From NCBI GenBank assembly GCA_009103225.1, contig RHPI01000818.1, positions 186,001 through 250,000 of the forward strand: a stretch of 64,000 nt of DNA, read 5' to 3'. Below are positions 50,442-64,000 of the stretch, piece by piece (the first letter of the stretch is position 1; each line of letters starts with the position of its first letter). Both the position numbers and the translations under genes were made by a program. Source of the DNA: Chlorokybus atmophyticus (Eukaryota; Plantae; Mesostigma and Chlorokybus algae). The notes under the pieces were generated by a model that saw nothing but the letters and a program-made list of their open reading frames with translations, made no database searches and was not told where the DNA came from.

Positions 50442-52817
50442 CTAGCTAAAGTATATTGGTTTCGCTCGTGCTGATCGCGGTGACTCAGGTGGTCTCTCGG
50501 GTAGCTCGTCCGCCGTCCTCCATCTAACAGCATTCATACCAACCATCATGATTGCCCATGCACGCATACGCGCGCATACACACTCCCAAACATGTGCACG
50601 CCACCTCCGCCCACCCACTCACTCCCACACACAACACGCACACACACACATACCTGACGTCGGTGACGAGTTCGGGGGCGTGGTGCACGCGGACGTCGCC
50701 GGCGGCGCGCTCGTGGCGCGACATCGAGTTCGAGTAGTGGAGTAGTGAGGGTGATGACGGAGACAGGGGATGCAAGGCTAGTGGGGTCTTGGGTTTGGGA
50801 AAGTGAGTCGTTGGGCCTCTACTCATCTCCTGCGTGTGCATCTTAGTGAGTTTGTGTATGAGAGAGAGAGAGAGAGAGAGNNNNNNNNNNNNNNNNNNNN
50901 NNNNNNNNNNNNNNNNNNNNNNNNNNNNNNNNNNNNNNNNNNNNNNNNNNNNNNNNNNNNNNNNNNNNNNNNNNNNNNNNNNNNNNNNNNNNNNNNNNNN
51001 NNNNNNNNNNNNNNNNNNNNNNNNNNNNNNNNNNNNNNNNNNNNNNNNNNNNNNNNNNNNNNNNNNNNNNNNNNNNNNNNNNNNNNNNNNNNNNNNNNNN
51101 NNNNNNNNNNNNNNNNNNNNNNNNNNNNNNNNNNNNNNNNNNNNNNNNNNNNNNNNNNNNNNNNNNNNNNNNNNNNNNNNNNNNNNNNNNNNNNNNNNNN
51201 NNNNNNNNNNNNNNNNNNNNNNNNNNNNNNNNNNNNNNNNNNNNNNNNNNNNNNNNNNNNNNNNNNNNNNNNNNNNNNNNNNNNNNNNNNNNNNNNGGAG
51301 AGGGGGAGGGGGAGGGGGAGAGGGAGAGCGAGAGCGAGAGAGAGAGGGAGAGGGGGAGGGGGGGAGAGGGAGCGGGAGAGAGAGGGGGAGAGAGGGAGAG
51401 GGAGAGAGTGCTTGTGTGCCTTTGGTGAAGGCGGATGCTGTGCCAGCCTCGCTGCCTCCAACACCTCCTCCTGATTCAGCTTCGCCTCCATCTGGAACTG
51501 CGCCTTCAGCTCCCTCGCTTCCTATACACACAGCAACACTTGTACCCCCCACAACTAACTCACAATTGCGCAGATCACTGTTGACGCTCGTCACGTATGC
51601 AGATGACTGCTGCGTTACAAGCCAGGCAATACAAGTGGCAGCACAGCAGGTACCTGGCACAGTGCGCATGTGTGCGAGAAGCAATGCGTGCAGCAGTCGC
51701 TCTTCGGCAACTCCTGCAAAGATGAGAGTGCACACATGCCCACAGTGAGAAGAAGCACGACACACTCACCCACCAGCCACCTATTCAGAACAACACGTCA
51801 CACACGTACACATCCACCTCAAACCCACCCACCCACACTCACCCACCTACCTTCAGGTTGTAGTAATGCCTAATGCGCGTTCGGTGTCCGTACGCGATAA
51901 TCGGCACGGGCGTGCACGCGTGGGCGCACGGTCCCAACACTGGCGCCAGCAGGCAGCCGATCGCGCCGCCCAGCAGGCAGTGGAGCAGGCACGGGGACCA
52001 GCAGGAGCGACCGGGAGGACGGGAGATGGCCTCCACGTTGTAGCCGAAGAGTATGCAGGGGCAGCAGAGACCCAACCAACCTGGGAGACGGAGTGTGGGA
52101 TGGGGAGAGGTACTTTGCGTGTGGTTGCATAGTTTGGCGTGCGCAGATGCAAGTGCATAATTGAACTTGCATCTGTGCATGTGTACGTGCACAATTGCAA
52201 GATGACATGCACACGCACACACATGCGCGACGACAGTTACATACATATGTGTATACGCACATACGCACGCACATGCCCACCTACACACCATTACATTTTA
52301 CATACGTTGACGCATATGCACTCCCGCACGCACATGCCACATACATGCACTCACAAGCACTGGCCCACAAACCCACCAATATGACAATTACGCGCACGCG
52401 CTCGCGCGCACACACACGTCCACTTGCATGCTTACATATCTCCTCGTCTGAGCAGCAGGCGCATATGTGTGTGTGCCATGGGCTGGGCCGCCAGTCGTGG
52501 GGGTTGCGGCGGCGGGCCAGGGGGGTGCCGCCACCGCCGTCCAGATGCGCATCCGCCGGCTTCAACCCGTCTGTGCAAGAATGACGAGTCTCATACTGTT
52601 ATTGTCACCACTGACTGACTCTATGGGCAATTGAAGCAATGTTGACAACCGTCTTTCAACACATGTTACTGCGTTAAGACCTGTCTACTGTGCATCAGTC
52701 GCGTGCTAATGACCTCATGTCCCCAACCTATGCGCACGCACGTACACGCACACCTGCTATGGCTCGCCTGGCGTTGAACACGCTTCCGCTGATGGGCTCA
52801 TTCACAGGCCCGTCCAT
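50442..52817 (-). CDS. PLAC8-family (PCR/CNR/FW2.2-like) Cys-rich membrane protein with long C-terminal tail; one intron spans the N gap
   Basis: W..HICACCSDEEI/CWLGLCCPCILFGYN..R.RIR..YNL/..DCCTHCFSHTCALCQ/EAREL is the PLAC8 signature. Start 52817 and tail exons are inferred. Confidence 0.85.
50881..51296. other. Assembly gap (416 N) flanked by GA-rich simple repeats
   Basis: Directly visible. Confidence 1.
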
Positions 52818-56394: not shown

Positions 56395-59081
56395 AGGGGA
56401 GTGTTGTAGCGCTATCTCGTAATACAAACAGCCATAGCCCAAACAACCATACGTGTACAGTATTGTCTAACGCTGTGAAATTTACATTTGGTTTCAGCTG
56501 AGTATGTGGCTGTGCTTGCCTTGGTGGCAACATCGGGTGTCAAGTATCATGCAAGAGTAGGGTTTTACTGCAGAATTTGTGTGGACTGTGTCAAGTAGCT
56601 CAAGCACGTTGACCAGCTATGCATGGGTGCAGCTTTTCATGCAGCATGAATGTATCATGGTGAATAGACATTTGCCAAGAATAGTAAAAATTGCACAAGA
56701 GGGTATCAAAGCAAAGGTAGCCTACTCTTGTGGTGCATGCAACGCGAAAAGGTATACTATTGCAATCCCATACCTCATGCATGCTATACCTAACTTTATT
56801 GTTTCACGCCAAATGCTTCTGCCCGCTGCTGCATCATGTAGGCTCACAAGGTACTGCGCATGATGTTACACTAAGCCATGTGTGATGCATGCTATGAGAG
56901 TGTGTAAACATTGGTGCTGGCTTAAACCCTTTCGTATGTTGTGCTATGCCATACACCCTTACACCATCACTCACTAGTATCCATCATATCTCTAAGTGCT
57001 CCACGCAACCACATCCATAAGTACAGCCATACAGCCATCAACCCCGCCCTCAAATACCACTTGCAGCGCGGTCGCCGCAGTTAGCAAGTGGGTATACGAA
57101 TATGATTGCGTCACGCCCAATACGTGTTGCTGCATAGCATCACAACACTAGCAAACAATCCAGATGCTAGGTTGTAAGTTCAGCTTGTATACTTGTCTTA
57201 TTGTGTGCGTGTCATTGCTTTCCATGATGCATGTGATGCATGTAATTGTGCACAAGTGTGCATTGCATGTCATAAAACGAACTTTGACAATAGTCTTGTA
57301 CTTGTGGGCATTCATCTCTACCCTCTACACCACATCAGCAATAGCATTGCACCTGCTGAACATATGAGTACAACTTGATTAGCATTCACTTGGTTTGAAT
57401 CCATGCGCTGCTGGTGTATGTTGGAGTCGCTGGTATAGCTGGTACTTGACATGTTTTAATAACTTTATAATAAACTTTATATCTACCGCAAAATTGCAAT
57501 GGTCTGAATTGAGTGCCAGCTATCCAAGTTGCCTTTTGAGAACAATCGTTAACAGCGATGACGAGCCACTCGCCGTCCATTTGCGAGGTGTGAGTTCACG
57601 CTCCTTCAAGAAGCGTGAAGGGTAGTGGTAATACCATTACCCCTCAAGATGCTAGAGGGGAACACACTATTAAACATATTATGCTATCTTCTCGCAAGAA
57701 ATACCACTTATCTACTTATACCGATAATAAGATGTGCTATAAAAAAAAACTGCATCACAAAATATGCGTTGATGTGTCGAGTACAATTATTGCGTGTGTC
57801 CTCTGTGTGTGGTGCCTATCTCATAATAAAGTGCGACCTAGAGTACATTACGCCTTAAAGGAACTCCGCAGGTACCGTATTGGGAAAGGAGGGGGGGAAG
57901 GGGGGGGGTAACTTTCCAAGTTGTTCACTGTACTATACTTTTGAGCCAAAAGTATCACTTACCAATTTTTTGCAAGTCATCGCAGATCAGCATGTGGTTG
58001 TTCGACTCTGCTTGTAACCACTTACACTATTGTGTGTAATTTGGTACTATATTATATTACTGGTAGTGACATCGTAAAGTTCAATTGCTGAATCAACTTA
58101 AATTTTATGTTCAATGGTAAATATTAAGTTTCTGTTTTGATGACATGCATTGTTTAAGTGATGACATTAAGCATGAAGTGCAGTATACAGCGTTTACATA
58201 AATAATGCTTGCATCATGTTGGCTTCACAGTGTAAACTTTAAAAAACTTGTGCAGGAGTTTTATCGGTGTAGTGAAATGTATGTATACAATGCAACAAAC
58301 AAATCCGACAAGTTCATCAAGCTTTGTTAACATGCCGCAGTATGAAAGTTCGTAGTTAGTATTTGTATGACGAACAATATGTTATTGTAATTGTAAGCAA
58401 AAAACAAAAAGCAAATTAGTTGCGTGTTCAAGCACATTAGCTGCGTGTCAATGCAACAATGCGACACACAATTGAGATGTACAGTGCCTTCCAAGTTGCT
58501 TATGCTCTAATTGCATCTCTCAAGGTGGGGTATCAACATCATTGACATTATAACCACATGTTGGTCATGCAATCAACTCTTTGTGATGCGCAGCTGTGTT
58601 TTCATAACAGAATGTTGGGCAGTGGTATGGTAGGATTGCACGAAGAGGTAGCCGAACCTAGTCAACTCATAAGAGTAGGTTGGACGAAATACAAACAATG
58701 TCTATAACATGCATAACTGCATTATACATCTACATTGGCACCAACAATGCCCATCATTATGCTCATAATCGCACTCTTCAAGTGTACTACAATAATGGCG
58801 TGTAAGACAACAACATATGATTGCAGCGTAGCTGCGGAAACGTTGTGTACACCATGCATTTATGTGGGCTTCCTTGATGCTGCAATGATGCATGTCCAAC
58901 GCAACGACTACCGACAAGGGGTGCCGCACACAACCTGTCTGATACGCTGCACAATGTGTGCAATGCCCACATGCAACACTTGCTGGCACTCAACACGAAA
59001 CAATATTGCCTAGGCTACAGCTTATGCCATGACTACTTAAAGAACAGGACCAATATGCATCCGTTTGAAATGTTTTGTACT

Positions 59082-61784
59082 TTAAGGTTTGGCATCCACC
59101 AACCTAGTAGCAACGAATGCTATTAGCTCCCAGGCAGCTTCAACGTGCCGTAGCTCTGTCATTGCTGCACCAATTGCGATTCGCAAAGTGAAAATCCCCG
59201 ACAGCACCTGAATCAATAGAACCTATCAACACTAAAACCATGCTGCCAATCGCACACCAGGAAGGGCAAAAACAACGACGAGCCAACGCAAAAGGTCTGT
59301 CAACAAGGATGTCAAACAGGCCTACTCACCGTGTGCGTCATGAAAAGTTTGCCCGTGTCATTCACTGCATCCAACAACTGCTGGTTGATAACATTGCCGT
59401 CTGCGTTACGGTCAGCGGGCGGCTTCAGTCTGAAGCAGACGAGGGAGAACAGCGTTGGAGCCAAACTCTGCAATGGGAGCTGCATGAGTATATAAACTTG
59501 CATACACAAGGGCAACACTCTGTCTGTAGTATGCCCACTACTCTGGTGCAGAGCAGGAAGTGTACAACATACCTCAAATCTATCGTCCTTCAACACCCAC
59601 GACTCGAAGAGCTTGGCATACTCGCAATGCTTGCGTATGTGTGTGCGCAGCCCCTTCAATCCATACGCGCGCAGCACAAACCACAGCTTCAATGCCCTGC
59701 CCAACTTGTCATGATGAGCACACAACTCAGACGAAGAGTCAGAACATGCAAACAGCCATGCCTGCAGCTCAGCACTTAATGCAAGTCACATACAGCAGAA
59801 AGGGCGAATCCCACTGAATACACCCAACCATCACCTGAAGCGGCGGCCTAGCGGTATCTGCCAATCTTTGTAATCCACTACCAAGCCGGTGTCTGATGCC
59901 GCATTCCGCAAGAACACTTGCTGCACAGACAAGGCAGCTTGCAGCCAGCTGGCGTCCTGCAAATTGTGTTCAGCTGGTCAACAAATCATGTTCTGCACCC
60001 TCTGTGTCAAGCAAAACAAGACAATCTACCACACTCCCACATCAGCTGTCCTGACAATGCAATGCACAATAGAGCGAGAATGCATCAGAAAGCAACCTAT
60101 GCTTAGTGTCTGACCTTCACCCACAAAGCAGAACAATCAAAGTTGGTCAGCAGCCACTTGTGCGCATTGACGCCAAGCGAATCAGCGAGCTCAACGCCGT
60201 CAAGGTAATGTCTGTATTCGGGACAGATGAGGGCGCTTCCAGCATAGGCTGCGTCAATGTGAAACCACACATCTTCTCTGCTTGTGATGAGCGCTAGCTC
60301 TGCGATGGGGTCCACTGCGGTGGAGGAAGTCGTCCCCACTGTACCCATGAGAAAGAAAGGTATGAGACCGGCTGCGCGGTCATCAGCTATCTGACTAGCA
60401 AGTACTTCTGGCCTGAGGGCATAGTTGTCCTCTCTCTCTGTGGGAAGATAGCGAAAGTTGTCCACGCTTATGCCCGCAATCATGCAAGCCTTCTTGAGAC
60501 TCGGGAACCCGTGATCGGAGGTGTAGCACACAAGCTTCAAGTTGGCGTTGGCCCGACTCGCGTTGTCTTCACATGATTGCAATGCACGCGCTCGTGCAGC
60601 GAGTAAAGCTACCAATGCAGCCTCAGAAGCCGTGCCTTGTATGACGCCTCCGCCTTTGTGACCAGATGTAAGAAAGCTCTCAGGCAGCTGCAGGGCTTTG
60701 CCCAGCCAGTCCAACACAATCATCTCGAGCTCCGTGGCAGCGGGGCTGTTGATCCAGCTGAAACCGATCGTGTTAAAAGCCGCGGACAGAAACTCCCCAA
60801 GCATGCCGGGGTAGCTGCTGTTTGCAGGGTAGTACGCGAAGAAGTTGGGGCTCTGCCAGTGAGTGATGCCTGGCATGATGTGCGCCTGCACATCTTTTAC
60901 ACAGTTGGTGGCCAATCAGCCTAGATTACAAGACTACAGGCAATCAGGCAAACATGTAGATGTACGCATGTCTGCATACGTGTACGTGCACGTGTACGAA
61001 TTCTTTGTACACACACGTCGATATATGTGTGTTCATGTGTATGGCAACAAGAACACACATGCAAAAGCACATGTACACAAGCACAGGTAAACGTGTAAAC
61101 CTGTATGCCCACGCACATTTGCATACACGTGTATATGGGTGTTCGTACATACATGCGTCTGTCAACAGGCATGCGCATATGTGTACACGTGCACTAGACA
61201 GGCAAACATTCACGTGTAGAGGTACTCAACAGCGACCCACATGCTGTCCGCAGGTGTCCCGCTGCCAACCCTACCTTTCATGACCGCCTCCCATGGCTCG
61301 CCATCCTCTGGCGCATGGTCTGGCAGCAGTTCCTTCAGGAAGCCAGGCGACACCTGCATGCCCACCGTACCAATACCATCTCAACCAAGCAATGTGCGAC
61401 TGCAGGTGTTTACACTTTATTCTAACAAGCAGCAAACACAATCAAGCCGCACCTTGCTGCGCACAGGGTACTGCTCAATGTCTCTGTAGTAGTCCGCAAT
61501 GAAGTCCACCATGGCGTGGGCATGGGCACGGAACTCCTCGTTGCTCCACGGATGATGGGTGGCTCCATGCTCGCTTGTGCTCGTGTCACCTGATGAACGT
61601 CACAAACTCAACATGCACGTCTGCTATCCAGCATTGCTCCTTACTCAGGACAGCGAGCCAAGCCACAGAATGAGCAGCCACCAGCATGCTCAACTTAGAG
61701 CTCAGCACTAGCTGATCACACCCATCACGCCGGGGGACAGCCGCATTAACAGCAACTGACCAGAACCTCACCGTTCTCCGCCAT
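59082..61784 (-). CDS. Group II PLP-dependent aromatic L-amino acid decarboxylase family protein; active-site residues predict an aldehyde synthase or other atypical activity (about 8 exons)
   Basis: [94 protein letters not shown] (PLP Lys), [20 protein letters not shown]; stop at 59082. Confidence 0.95.
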
Positions 61785-62025
61785 GACCGCCGCAATTGGC
61801 GACACCGCCGACCACCACCACAGCGATGTTGCCGGCCCAGCTTGCACGTAAGCAAAACCCTGTTCTCGAAATGAACGTAGCACTATTGCTTACTCCAAAT
61901 TCTGTACGCGGAGCACTAGACCCGATATGCCTACACACAGGCCAAACTTTGTGGCGGAAACTGTAGCCAGCGACACTACACTACAGCAAGCACAGTAAGA
62001 GCATAATTTTCCATAGACCTGCACC

Positions 62026-64000
62026 ATGGCGGCGGCGGCGGTGGGCGCGTTGGTGGTGGGCGCCGGGGTGAGAGGGATTGCAGCGGAGGGGCTTTCAGCT
62101 TCCGGGAGGCGGCAGGGTGTTCAGAGAGTGGCTGCGCAGGAGAGAGGGGCGTTCTGGGGTTGCCAGCAGGTGGTGCTAGGGTTGCATGCGTGCGGCGGTA
62201 GCAAAAGCAGGAGGCGGCGGCGGCGGGCTGGGCCGGCTGCGGTGAGCGCTGTGCTGCTGGAGAATGACGTGGACGCTAGCACCTCCTCGTCTGGCAACGG
62301 TGCCACAAGCAATGGCAACGGTTCCGACGTCGTCACGCCGCCCTCCCGAACCTCAGGACGCAAGGCTGCAGGCACCAAGGGTGCTTCGTCTGTCAGCTCA
62401 GGAATCAAGCTGGAGAAGGTTTGTGCTTGTGCTACTTAGCTATACAGTGTGTTTGTAACCAATTCAGCTCAAGTTCCGCGCTGGTGAAGAATTCAAGCTC
62501 CAGACTAATTTGTTTTAATCATGCGTGTACCAGCGTGCAATCATTCATAATGCGATTTGCTTGCTGGGCAAATGCTGCAAGCTCTGCATACGTAGAGAAT
62601 ATCGTACGAATGCTTGCGCGCGCATACGCCGATTGCCTGGTTGTACATGGTCGCATAGAGATTGCATGTACACTGTTCCCTATGGCTGCGTACGACTTCA
62701 ACGTGTGCCTTGGGAGTAGGATGCCGTGGTTCAGGCTTTATGTCGTGTATGTAGATTGTGTCATGCACATGTGGTGAACTATGTGCGCAACAAGTCTGTC
62801 TATTGGTGCATGTGCATGCATGCCATGAGAATTGGTAGTTGCAACTGCCGCAGCATGTACGAGTGCATCTGCGAAACTCCCCAAGCCAAGTACTGATTGA
62901 TGAGTGTGCAGTGCGGTGCTTCGTATTCGTAGATACTCGTGTGGTTGTACATCCGGTAGTCTCAATTGCTTGGCCGATGTCTGTTGCATGTCTTGCTGCA
63001 TAAACAGCGTCAGGCTGCCGTGATGACTACACTTGATCAATAGTCGCCATCTGTTGTGTCACTCTCATCAACTCCCCCCCNNNNNNNNNNNNNNNNNNNN
63101 NNNNNNNNNNNNNNNNNNNNNNNNNNNNNNNNNNNNNNNNNNNNNNNNNNNNNNNNNNNNNNNNNNNNNNNNNNNNNNNNNNNNNCCCCCCCCCCCCCCC
63201 CCCCCCCCCCTACCCCACCAGGACAGTCTCTTTGATCCAGCATGACATTTGTCGTAGATTGAACTTGATTGGCACGCAGGTCAGCAAAACCTTCAAGAAC
63301 GCACAGGTTCTTAAGGATGTTTCCTGGGAGGTGAAAAAAGGTGAGCGTGTTGGCTTGGTTGGAGTCAATGGCGCTGGCAAGACAACACAACTCAAGATCA
63401 TTGCTGGTCTTATGGAACCCGATGATGGCGAGGTGCGGTAGAAGCTAGGCCTTGCATGGAGACACTCAACAGGCTGGTACTAAGATCATGTGCTTGTCCT
63501 TGACAGGTTATCAGAGCCAATAACCGCATGCAAATCGCATACCTGACGCAAGAGTTTGACGTGGTACCCACGCGCACTGTGCGAGAAGAGTTCATGAGTG
63601 CGTTTGCAGAGCAACTCGCTGTCCAGAAGGAGATTGAAGAAGTGCAAGTGGGCATTGAGAATGCTACCGAAGACATGGATCTGCTGACACAGCTGTTGGA
63701 TAGGCTGGACGTGTTGCAGCGAAAGGCAGAGTCGGTTGACTTGTACAGCATGGACAAATTCATAGACAAGATGATGCCCAGTTTAGGTTTCACCTCTGAA
63801 GACAATGATCGGTTAGTGGCGTCCTTCAGTGGGGGTTGGCAGATGCGGATGTCCTTAGGAAAGGTATGCAGCGTGCACTGATCGTTATGTGTTGCTGTGG
63901 TTGTCTGGCCTATTCAATAGCATGCATTGGTGCTGCCAGATATTGCTACAAGAGCCAGACCTTTTGCTACTTGATGAGCCTACGAACCATCTGGACCTGG
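62026..64000 (+). CDS. ABCF5: Chloroplast ABC-F protein (ABCF5/ABCF2-like, EttA-related), truncated by the window end
   Basis: Transit peptide, then SSVSSGIKLEK/VSKTFK..VLKDVSWEVKKGERVGLVGVNGAGKTTQL (Walker A), FSGGWQMRMSLGK (signature) and LLLDEPTNHLDL (Walker B). Confidence 0.93.
63081..63185. other. Assembly gap (105 N) inside a poly-C run in ABCF intron 1
   Basis: Directly visible. Confidence 1.

Follow-up and report, generated by a model that had tools for sequence, protein, structure and literature searches.

What chemistry can be expected of an aromatic amino acid decarboxylase (AAAD) in which the residues at both known switch positions of the catalytic loops are Phe? The question is raised by a gene on the minus strand of a 64,000-nucleotide stretch of DNA from the alga Chlorokybus atmophyticus (contig RHPI01000818.1 of assembly GCA_009103225.1, positions 186,001 to 250,000; the window). 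Its coding sequence (59082-61784) comprises eight exons separated by seven GT-AG introns and encodes a 505-aa group II pyridoxal 5'-phosphate (PLP) decarboxylase. The residue pattern of the protein suggests a functional, transcribed AAAD-family PLP enzyme, most likely a strict aromatic acetaldehyde synthase, a reading that we hold with moderate confidence. Both positions are known switches of an established family, and what is new is their combination in a natural enzyme. Few residues of group II PLP decarboxylases are as conserved as the His of the small catalytic loop, which is kept even in plant aldehyde synthases that lack its partner Tyr. A natural, expressed and otherwise strictly conserved protein with Phe at this site (Phe206) isolates the stacking role of the His and bears on whether the His also has a catalytic role in oxidative deamination.

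Catalytic loops, fold and relatives of the algal protein

The small catalytic loop reads S-D-H-G-F-P-S (residues 202-208; 60499-60519, minus strand; codons TCC GAT CAC GGG TTC CCG AGT), whereas the family pattern is S-D-Q-T/A-H-S-x. Phe206 (TTC, 60505-60507, minus strand) falls in the column of the PLP-stacking, proton-relay His (His192 in DDC, His203 in CrTDC and His205 in PsTyDC), and His204 (CAC, 60511-60513, minus strand) occupies the column of the family Gln. A phmmer search against all Protein Data Bank (PDB) chains aligned the loop gap-free and with maximal posterior confidence to the segment klvvyssdqthsalqkac of A. thaliana PAAS (AtPAAS, 6EEI), and the small-loop alignments with Catharanthus TDC and poppy TyDC were likewise gap-free. 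The anchors LVxYxSD and S/AxxKA keep their spacing on both sides, and Phe206 therefore sits in the His192 (DDC) column, as the first-pass annotation of this DNA had proposed from the sequence. A compensated frameshift at the loop was rejected, since neither of the other reading frames gives QTH. The change from CAC to TTC requires two base substitutions and would pass through TAC (Tyr) or CTC (Leu), both of which have been reported at the small-loop His site in Papaver sequences.

The small loop lies in exon 4 (60115-60893), the largest exon, which encodes the large PLP-binding domain and is contained in a 270-aa open frame (60103-60915) that also holds the HIDAAY motif. The large catalytic loop is encoded by exon 5 (59835-59956), where vqqvFlrn aligns with tnpeFlkn of AtPAAS and ldptYlkh of human DDC. 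Phe351 (TTC, 59912-59914) replaces the large-loop catalytic Tyr (Tyr332 in DDC, Tyr348 in CrTDC) and corresponds to Phe338 of AtPAAS, which agrees with the Tyr-to-Phe change read earlier from the sequence. The PLP Schiff-base Lys (K322, in NAHKW) and the Asp of HIDAAY (D290), the partner of the pyridine nitrogen, both encoded by exon 4, are intact, as had also been stated; in the 397 aligned relatives described below, these columns hold Lys in 371 and Asp in 391 cases. T264 and the residues at the pocket positions defined for plant AAADs (W89, Y97, Y98, P99, A100, I119, F121, F328, L372 and G373) carry common family states, and the pocket departs from that of AtPAAS solely at two sites, where AtPAAS has Ser for A100 and Val for I119. 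Tyr97 and Tyr98, in the AYYPAN stretch of exon 4, occupy the positions of DDC Tyr79 and Phe80. In insects, Tyr at the second of these positions has been described as a DHPAAS-type tuning residue, and it is present in 154 of the 397 relatives, AtPAAS among them; Tyr98 counts as a third, shared, aldehyde-synthase-leaning feature.

Set against the residue patterns that define the known enzyme types, the protein departs twice from canonical amine-forming AAADs (DDC, TyDC and TDC), at the large-loop Tyr (Phe351) and at the small-loop His (Phe206). It agrees with the plant-type aldehyde synthases (AtPAAS, PhPAAS and Rr4HPAAS), which are intact AAADs apart from a Phe in place of the large-loop Tyr. 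With the insect and Myrtaceae type, where the His is replaced by Asn and the Tyr is kept, it has in common the loss of the His alone, since the replacing residue is Phe instead of Asn and the Tyr is lost.

Searches were run per exon, each translated in frame, before the full-length public protein model P0287 (505 aa; EukProt EP00898 Chlorokybus atmophyticus P001113, identical to jgi/Chlat1/2001) was recovered by a profile search seeded with Chara and Physcomitrium proteins together with exon 4. The joined translation of the eight exons matches P0287 exactly, followed by the stop codon. Residues 53-433 of the full protein match the Pfam family PF00282 (Pyridoxal_deC) over the entire profile (1-375 of 375; E 3e-124; 414.9 bits versus a cut-off of 27), and exon 4 alone reaches E 6e-86. 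The AlphaFold2 model of P0287 has a predicted local distance difference test score (pLDDT) of 92.4 and a predicted template modelling score (pTM) of 0.90; residues 201-210 are modelled at a pLDDT of about 91, in a region composed of a strand (197-202), a loop (203-207) and a helix (208-215). The model shows the AAAD three-domain fold, with template modelling (TM) scores of at least 0.9 to AAAD structures from plants, human and insects. AtPAAS leads the Foldseek matches (TM 0.91/0.97, root-mean-square deviation 1.7 Å, 57% identity). Among 82 alignment columns conserved at 90% or more in the family, the algal protein keeps 81 and departs at the small-loop His alone. With this single departure, the sequence does not look like that of a decaying pseudo-enzyme.

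The AAAD gene is real and expressed. When public transcript contigs were compared with positions 59000-62000 of the window, spliced contigs from two studies (X1, 2021; X2, 2013) were found in which six of the seven introns had been removed at GT-AG. No differences from the genome were observed over 60114-60893 (X1) or 60114-60521 (X2), and both contigs span the HGF codons. Spliced transcripts of two studies thus match exon 4 without mismatch, and the Phe206 codon is not an assembly error. The earlier argument that several codon changes made a sequencing error unlikely is borne out by these contigs, and the cDNA reading of QTH that would have contradicted it was not seen.

To place the two residues among relatives, a first tally was made from the 120 best word-search matches and the 150 best representatives from 1.84 billion proteins, 266 of which were aligned; the addition of 115 full-length plant proteins and 16 cluster members gave 397 relatives. 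The small-loop column of the first tally held His in 256 of 266 and Asn in four, the remainder being gaps, apart from the mis-registered P0206. In the full set, His was found in 385 relatives, Asn in four and a true Phe in none, the others being gaps or truncations and two gapped mis-registers. These two, P0206 (an apparent Phe) and P0246 (a gap at this site), are mis-registers of a shorter S-x-H-F loop, and the His is kept in both. The four relatives with Asn have the large-loop Tyr wherever that loop was aligned, and none of the 397 natural relatives has both switch residues changed.

Further searches gave the same picture. A word search with the loop region (residues 113-162 of the exon open reading frame) through 5.8 billion proteins found no 148-472-aa protein sharing three 5-residue words, a null that is weak as evidence of absence because full-length relatives fall outside this length range. 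Metagenome contigs gave no match to a degenerate DNA pattern for Y-x-S-D-H-G-F-P-S-x-x-K-A; of 44 metagenome loci that encode relatives, 39 could be aligned over the loop, and every one of these has His. When about 15 billion proteins are clustered at 90% identity, P0287 forms a cluster of its own; identity to the nearest relatives is 60-64%, none above 64% having been found, and the closest of the 150 best representatives reaches 63%. No other member of the SDHGF-type clade that the first-pass annotation suggested searching for was found in these searches, in which the algal protein stands alone. The absence of a known His-to-Phe enzyme, also claimed there, holds for natural proteins in the 397 relatives, the word search and the metagenome scan, but an engineered example exists: PDB 8X0O, a poppy TyDC carrying H203F (SDQTF).

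A quick maximum-likelihood tree of the exon-4 segments (unrooted, drawn with a midpoint root) placed the algal protein as sister to a 42-row clade of Chara and all sampled land-plant AAADs, with a Shimodaira-Hasegawa-like approximate likelihood ratio test value of 98 for the joint clade. Chlorokybus is among the earliest-branching streptophyte algae. Given the position of its protein next to the Chara and land-plant AAADs in this tree, the activity of the protein bears on whether aldehyde or amine formation came first in the plant lineage. On a reading that we consider improbable, the Phe states are old in the lineage; chemistry of the aldehyde-synthase type would then be older than land plants among streptophytes, and the amine-forming enzymes would be derived from it. 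The large-loop Phe also occurs in homologues of Volvox reticuliferus, Physcomitrium and Selaginella, while Chara has Tyr (relatives P0125, P0021/P0267, P0057 and P0121); an aldehyde-synthase-type loop is therefore scattered over green algae and early land plants, beyond the scent enzymes of flowering plants.

Predicted reaction and its alternatives

The aldehyde-synthase mechanism of the family is established in general. Applied to the algal protein, the substrate would form an external aldimine on the PLP held by K322, and the aldimine would be decarboxylated to a quinonoid carbanion. At this point an ordinary decarboxylase protonates C-alpha through the large-loop Tyr, contributed by its second subunit and aided by the small-loop His; when protonation is blocked, O2 attacks the carbanion, giving an aryl-acetaldehyde, ammonia and H2O2. 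As F351 and F206 replace both proton-delivery partners, the C-alpha face is predicted to be fully aprotic. The second function of the His, pi-stacking on the pyridine ring, would pass to Phe206, and the His may have been dispensable because its proton-relay role is without a partner once the Tyr is lost. The aldehyde-synthase assignment is thus favoured because the proton donor is absent, as in AtPAAS, and the helper His is replaced by a residue still able to stack; stacking of an aromatic residue on PLP is a general feature of the superfamily. A phenyl or hydroxyphenyl amino acid is the probable substrate, since the pocket is nearly that of the Arabidopsis PAAS. A strict aldehyde synthase without an amine leak could serve pathway engineering for tyrosol, phenylethanol and benzylisoquinoline precursors.

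This assignment draws on the behaviour of related enzymes at the same two positions. In the model of Torrens-Spence et al., the large-loop Tyr protonates the quinonoid C-alpha, and the small-loop His stacks on PLP and re-protonates the Tyr. Replacement of the Tyr by Phe (AtPAAS; PsTyDC Y350F) gives a specific aldehyde synthase, the PsTyDC variant producing 4-hydroxyphenylacetaldehyde with amine formation abolished. Replacement of the His by Asn (EgPAAS; PsTyDC H205N) gives aldehyde or mixed activity. In three known cases (EgPAAS and PsTyDC H205N, insect DHPAAS, and PsTyDC1), aldehyde synthesis is favoured when the small-loop His is lost.

Several observations weigh against the aldehyde-synthase assignment, and most of them favour a protein that keeps the fold and the PLP site but whose catalysis is crippled or very slow; such a pseudo-enzyme or binding protein would have needed the small-loop His for decarboxylation or transaldimination. 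The His seems to matter even in aldehyde synthases, and its loss may cost activity: besides being kept in 385 of the 397 relatives, it is retained by all 130 relatives with the large-loop Phe. A slow or inactive protein is for this reason a real alternative. Some natural His-to-Asn homologues are nearly inactive, those of the Myrtales genera Medinilla and Lagerstroemia showing little or no activity in yeast. The poppy H203F protein was crystallised with PLP and tyrosine, and the intact, unreacted tyrosine in 8X0O could mean that the His-to-Phe change slows turnover, although wild-type poppy structures were likewise solved with substrate bound, which tempers this interpretation. Finally, the lineage is a singleton, so that conservation of Phe206 over time cannot be shown from its one sequence. 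These points are countered by the 81 of 82 highly conserved columns that are retained, with every PLP-binding residue checked among them, and by a gene that is spliced and expressed in two data sets. At 0.51, the terminal branch of the algal protein is also shorter than the 0.69 of Chara braunii, likewise a deep-branching streptophyte of this clade, whereas drift at many conserved sites would be expected if catalytic constraint were absent. As PLP is held in 8X0O with Phe at the site, the residue is structurally tolerated and PLP still binds. A search of the accessible literature found no paper on the activity of the H203F mutant or on a Chlorokybus AAAD. Taken together, we regard a crippled enzyme as unlikely but worth serious consideration beside the aldehyde synthase that we prefer.

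A more far-reaching proposal, that of a new PLP reaction, had also been raised from the sequence, and no evidence pointing to one was found. Its premise would be that the aromatic-lined, aprotic Phe206/Phe351 site beside His204 supports an undescribed AAAD reaction beyond decarboxylation or the known oxidative deamination, such as another fate of the quinonoid or peroxide intermediate, perhaps with His204 as a repositioned acid/base. The Phe/Phe combination is indeed unique among the 397 relatives, the word search gave no protein with three 5-residue words in common with the loop, and AAAD active sites are known to switch chemistry by one or two changes. However, the rest of the pocket is ordinary, and with a loop of unchanged length between intact anchors on either side, His204 should not reach the stacking position. 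The additional His, two residues before the Phe and described earlier as part of the unusual site, is real, but it is not unique: four relatives have His at this column together with the normal His (SEHAHSS, SDHTHG). With the same His standing beside a normal one in these relatives and with loop length unchanged, His204 is probably not a new catalytic residue, and we consider a new specificity improbable.

It appears equally doubtful that the protein is an ordinary decarboxylase with water or another residue as proton donor to C-alpha. Part of the decarboxylase activity survives in PsTyDC H205N, and PsTyDC6, which has a canonical site but is reported to promote the activity of an aldehyde synthase, shows that residue-based prediction is imperfect. 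In the algal protein, however, the proton donor itself is Phe; this change is the defining mark of AtPAAS-type enzymes and by itself ends amine formation in PsTyDC, and the helper His is gone as well. An error of sequencing, assembly or splice modelling, a reasonable worry given that two Papaver sequences with odd residues at the small-loop His could not be cloned, is without supporting evidence and can be considered extremely improbable, since the genome, two independent spliced transcript assemblies and the P0287 model agree, the assemblies base for base, and four adjacent codons depart from the family pattern with the frame kept.

Gene structure and neighbourhood

The remaining exons of the AAAD gene are likewise on the minus strand. 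Exon 1 (61772-61784) carries the ATG (61784-61782) and agrees with the P0287 model, lying outside the transcript-contig coverage. Exon 2 (61453-61589) is covered by transcript contigs up to 61553 and matches P0287, and exons 3 (61275-61353), 6 (59573-59696) and 7 (59330-59467) are each supported by transcript contigs and by the match to P0287. Exon 8 (59082-59207), which has the same two lines of support, ends in the stop codon (59084-59082), and the 3' untranslated region extends below 59000. Intron 3 (60894-61274), at 381 bases the longest of the gene, contains many short palindromic words of the ACGTGT, CACGTG and TGTACA type; the G-box-like CACGTG occurs four times in it, and no tandem array was called there. 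No second AAAD copy was found within the window.

Transcript data filed under other names also touch the locus. Short contigs of run X3 (59000-59160, 59381-59545 and 60139-60320) and of run X4 (59000-59121 and 60062-60224) are 100% identical to it, introns included, and the two runs are filed under two organism labels other than that of the locus. The identity reflects either the same strain under different species names, Chlorokybus having been split into several species, or cross-sample carry-over. Another, very deep X3 contig (60814-60879, six differences) represents the AAAD of some other organism.

A divergent plus-strand open reading frame begins 241 bp from the AAAD start (61785-62025 lying between), the neighbouring exons on that strand being at 62026-62436, 63232-63438 and 63528-63878, and the two genes may share a bidirectional promoter. 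The frame starting at 62026 has a transit-peptide-like N-terminus rich in Ala, Gly and Arg. Farther downstream on the plus strand, ABC_tran (PF00005) exons resembling an ABCF-type ATPase are candidates for a separate gene or for the same gene as the 62026 frame. The assembly has gaps (N runs) at 63081-63185 (105 bases) and 50881-51296 (416 bases); a 25-base C homopolymer (63186-63210) directly follows the former and gives rise to spurious poly-Pro and poly-Gly frames.

Comparison with known systems

The plant 'basal-clade' enzyme AtPAAS is the best match of the algal protein both in sequence (E 6e-188 over the full length) and in structure. The two share the large-loop Phe, the Tyr-Tyr-Pro motif and a nearly identical substrate pocket. 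In contrast to the algal SDHGFPS, AtPAAS keeps the small-loop His (SDQTHS), and the algal protein is not nested among PAAS enzymes in the tree.

Replacement of the same small-loop His is shared with insect DHPAAS (6JRL) and Eucalyptus grandis PAAS, in which it shifts the outcome from amine to aldehyde; the literature confirmed the earlier statement that His-to-Asn changes give aldehyde synthases in insects and Myrtaceae. The insect enzyme has Asn192, and Asn192His moves it toward dopamine. In both enzymes a polar Asn amide contacts the PLP ring and the large-loop Tyr is kept, whereas the alga has an apolar aromatic Phe and has lost the Tyr.

A natural hydrophobic residue at this His is found in PsTyDC1. 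Expression of this enzyme, which has Leu205, supports aldehyde-dependent norcoclaurine formation, and L205H sharply raises tyramine, the aldehyde being undetected in vitro; the His-to-Leu and His-to-Tyr states seen in Papaver sequences were not taken further in the study of Torrens-Spence et al. Unlike the algal Phe, Leu is without aromatic stacking, and PsTyDC1 belongs to the flowering-plant TyDC clade. The Leu codon CTC is one base from both CAC (His) and TTC (Phe), which makes Leu a possible intermediate. The suggestion that the algal site represents a third route to aldehyde-synthase chemistry does not stand beside these enzymes: both altered positions are the two known switches, and a natural Leu205 had already been tied to aldehyde-synthase behaviour.

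The exact His-to-Phe change at the aligned position is that of Papaver somniferum TyDC2 H203F (8X0O). The poppy protein is a laboratory mutant that keeps the large-loop Tyr and an otherwise wild-type loop, whereas the algal protein carries its Phe206 naturally, together with Phe351.

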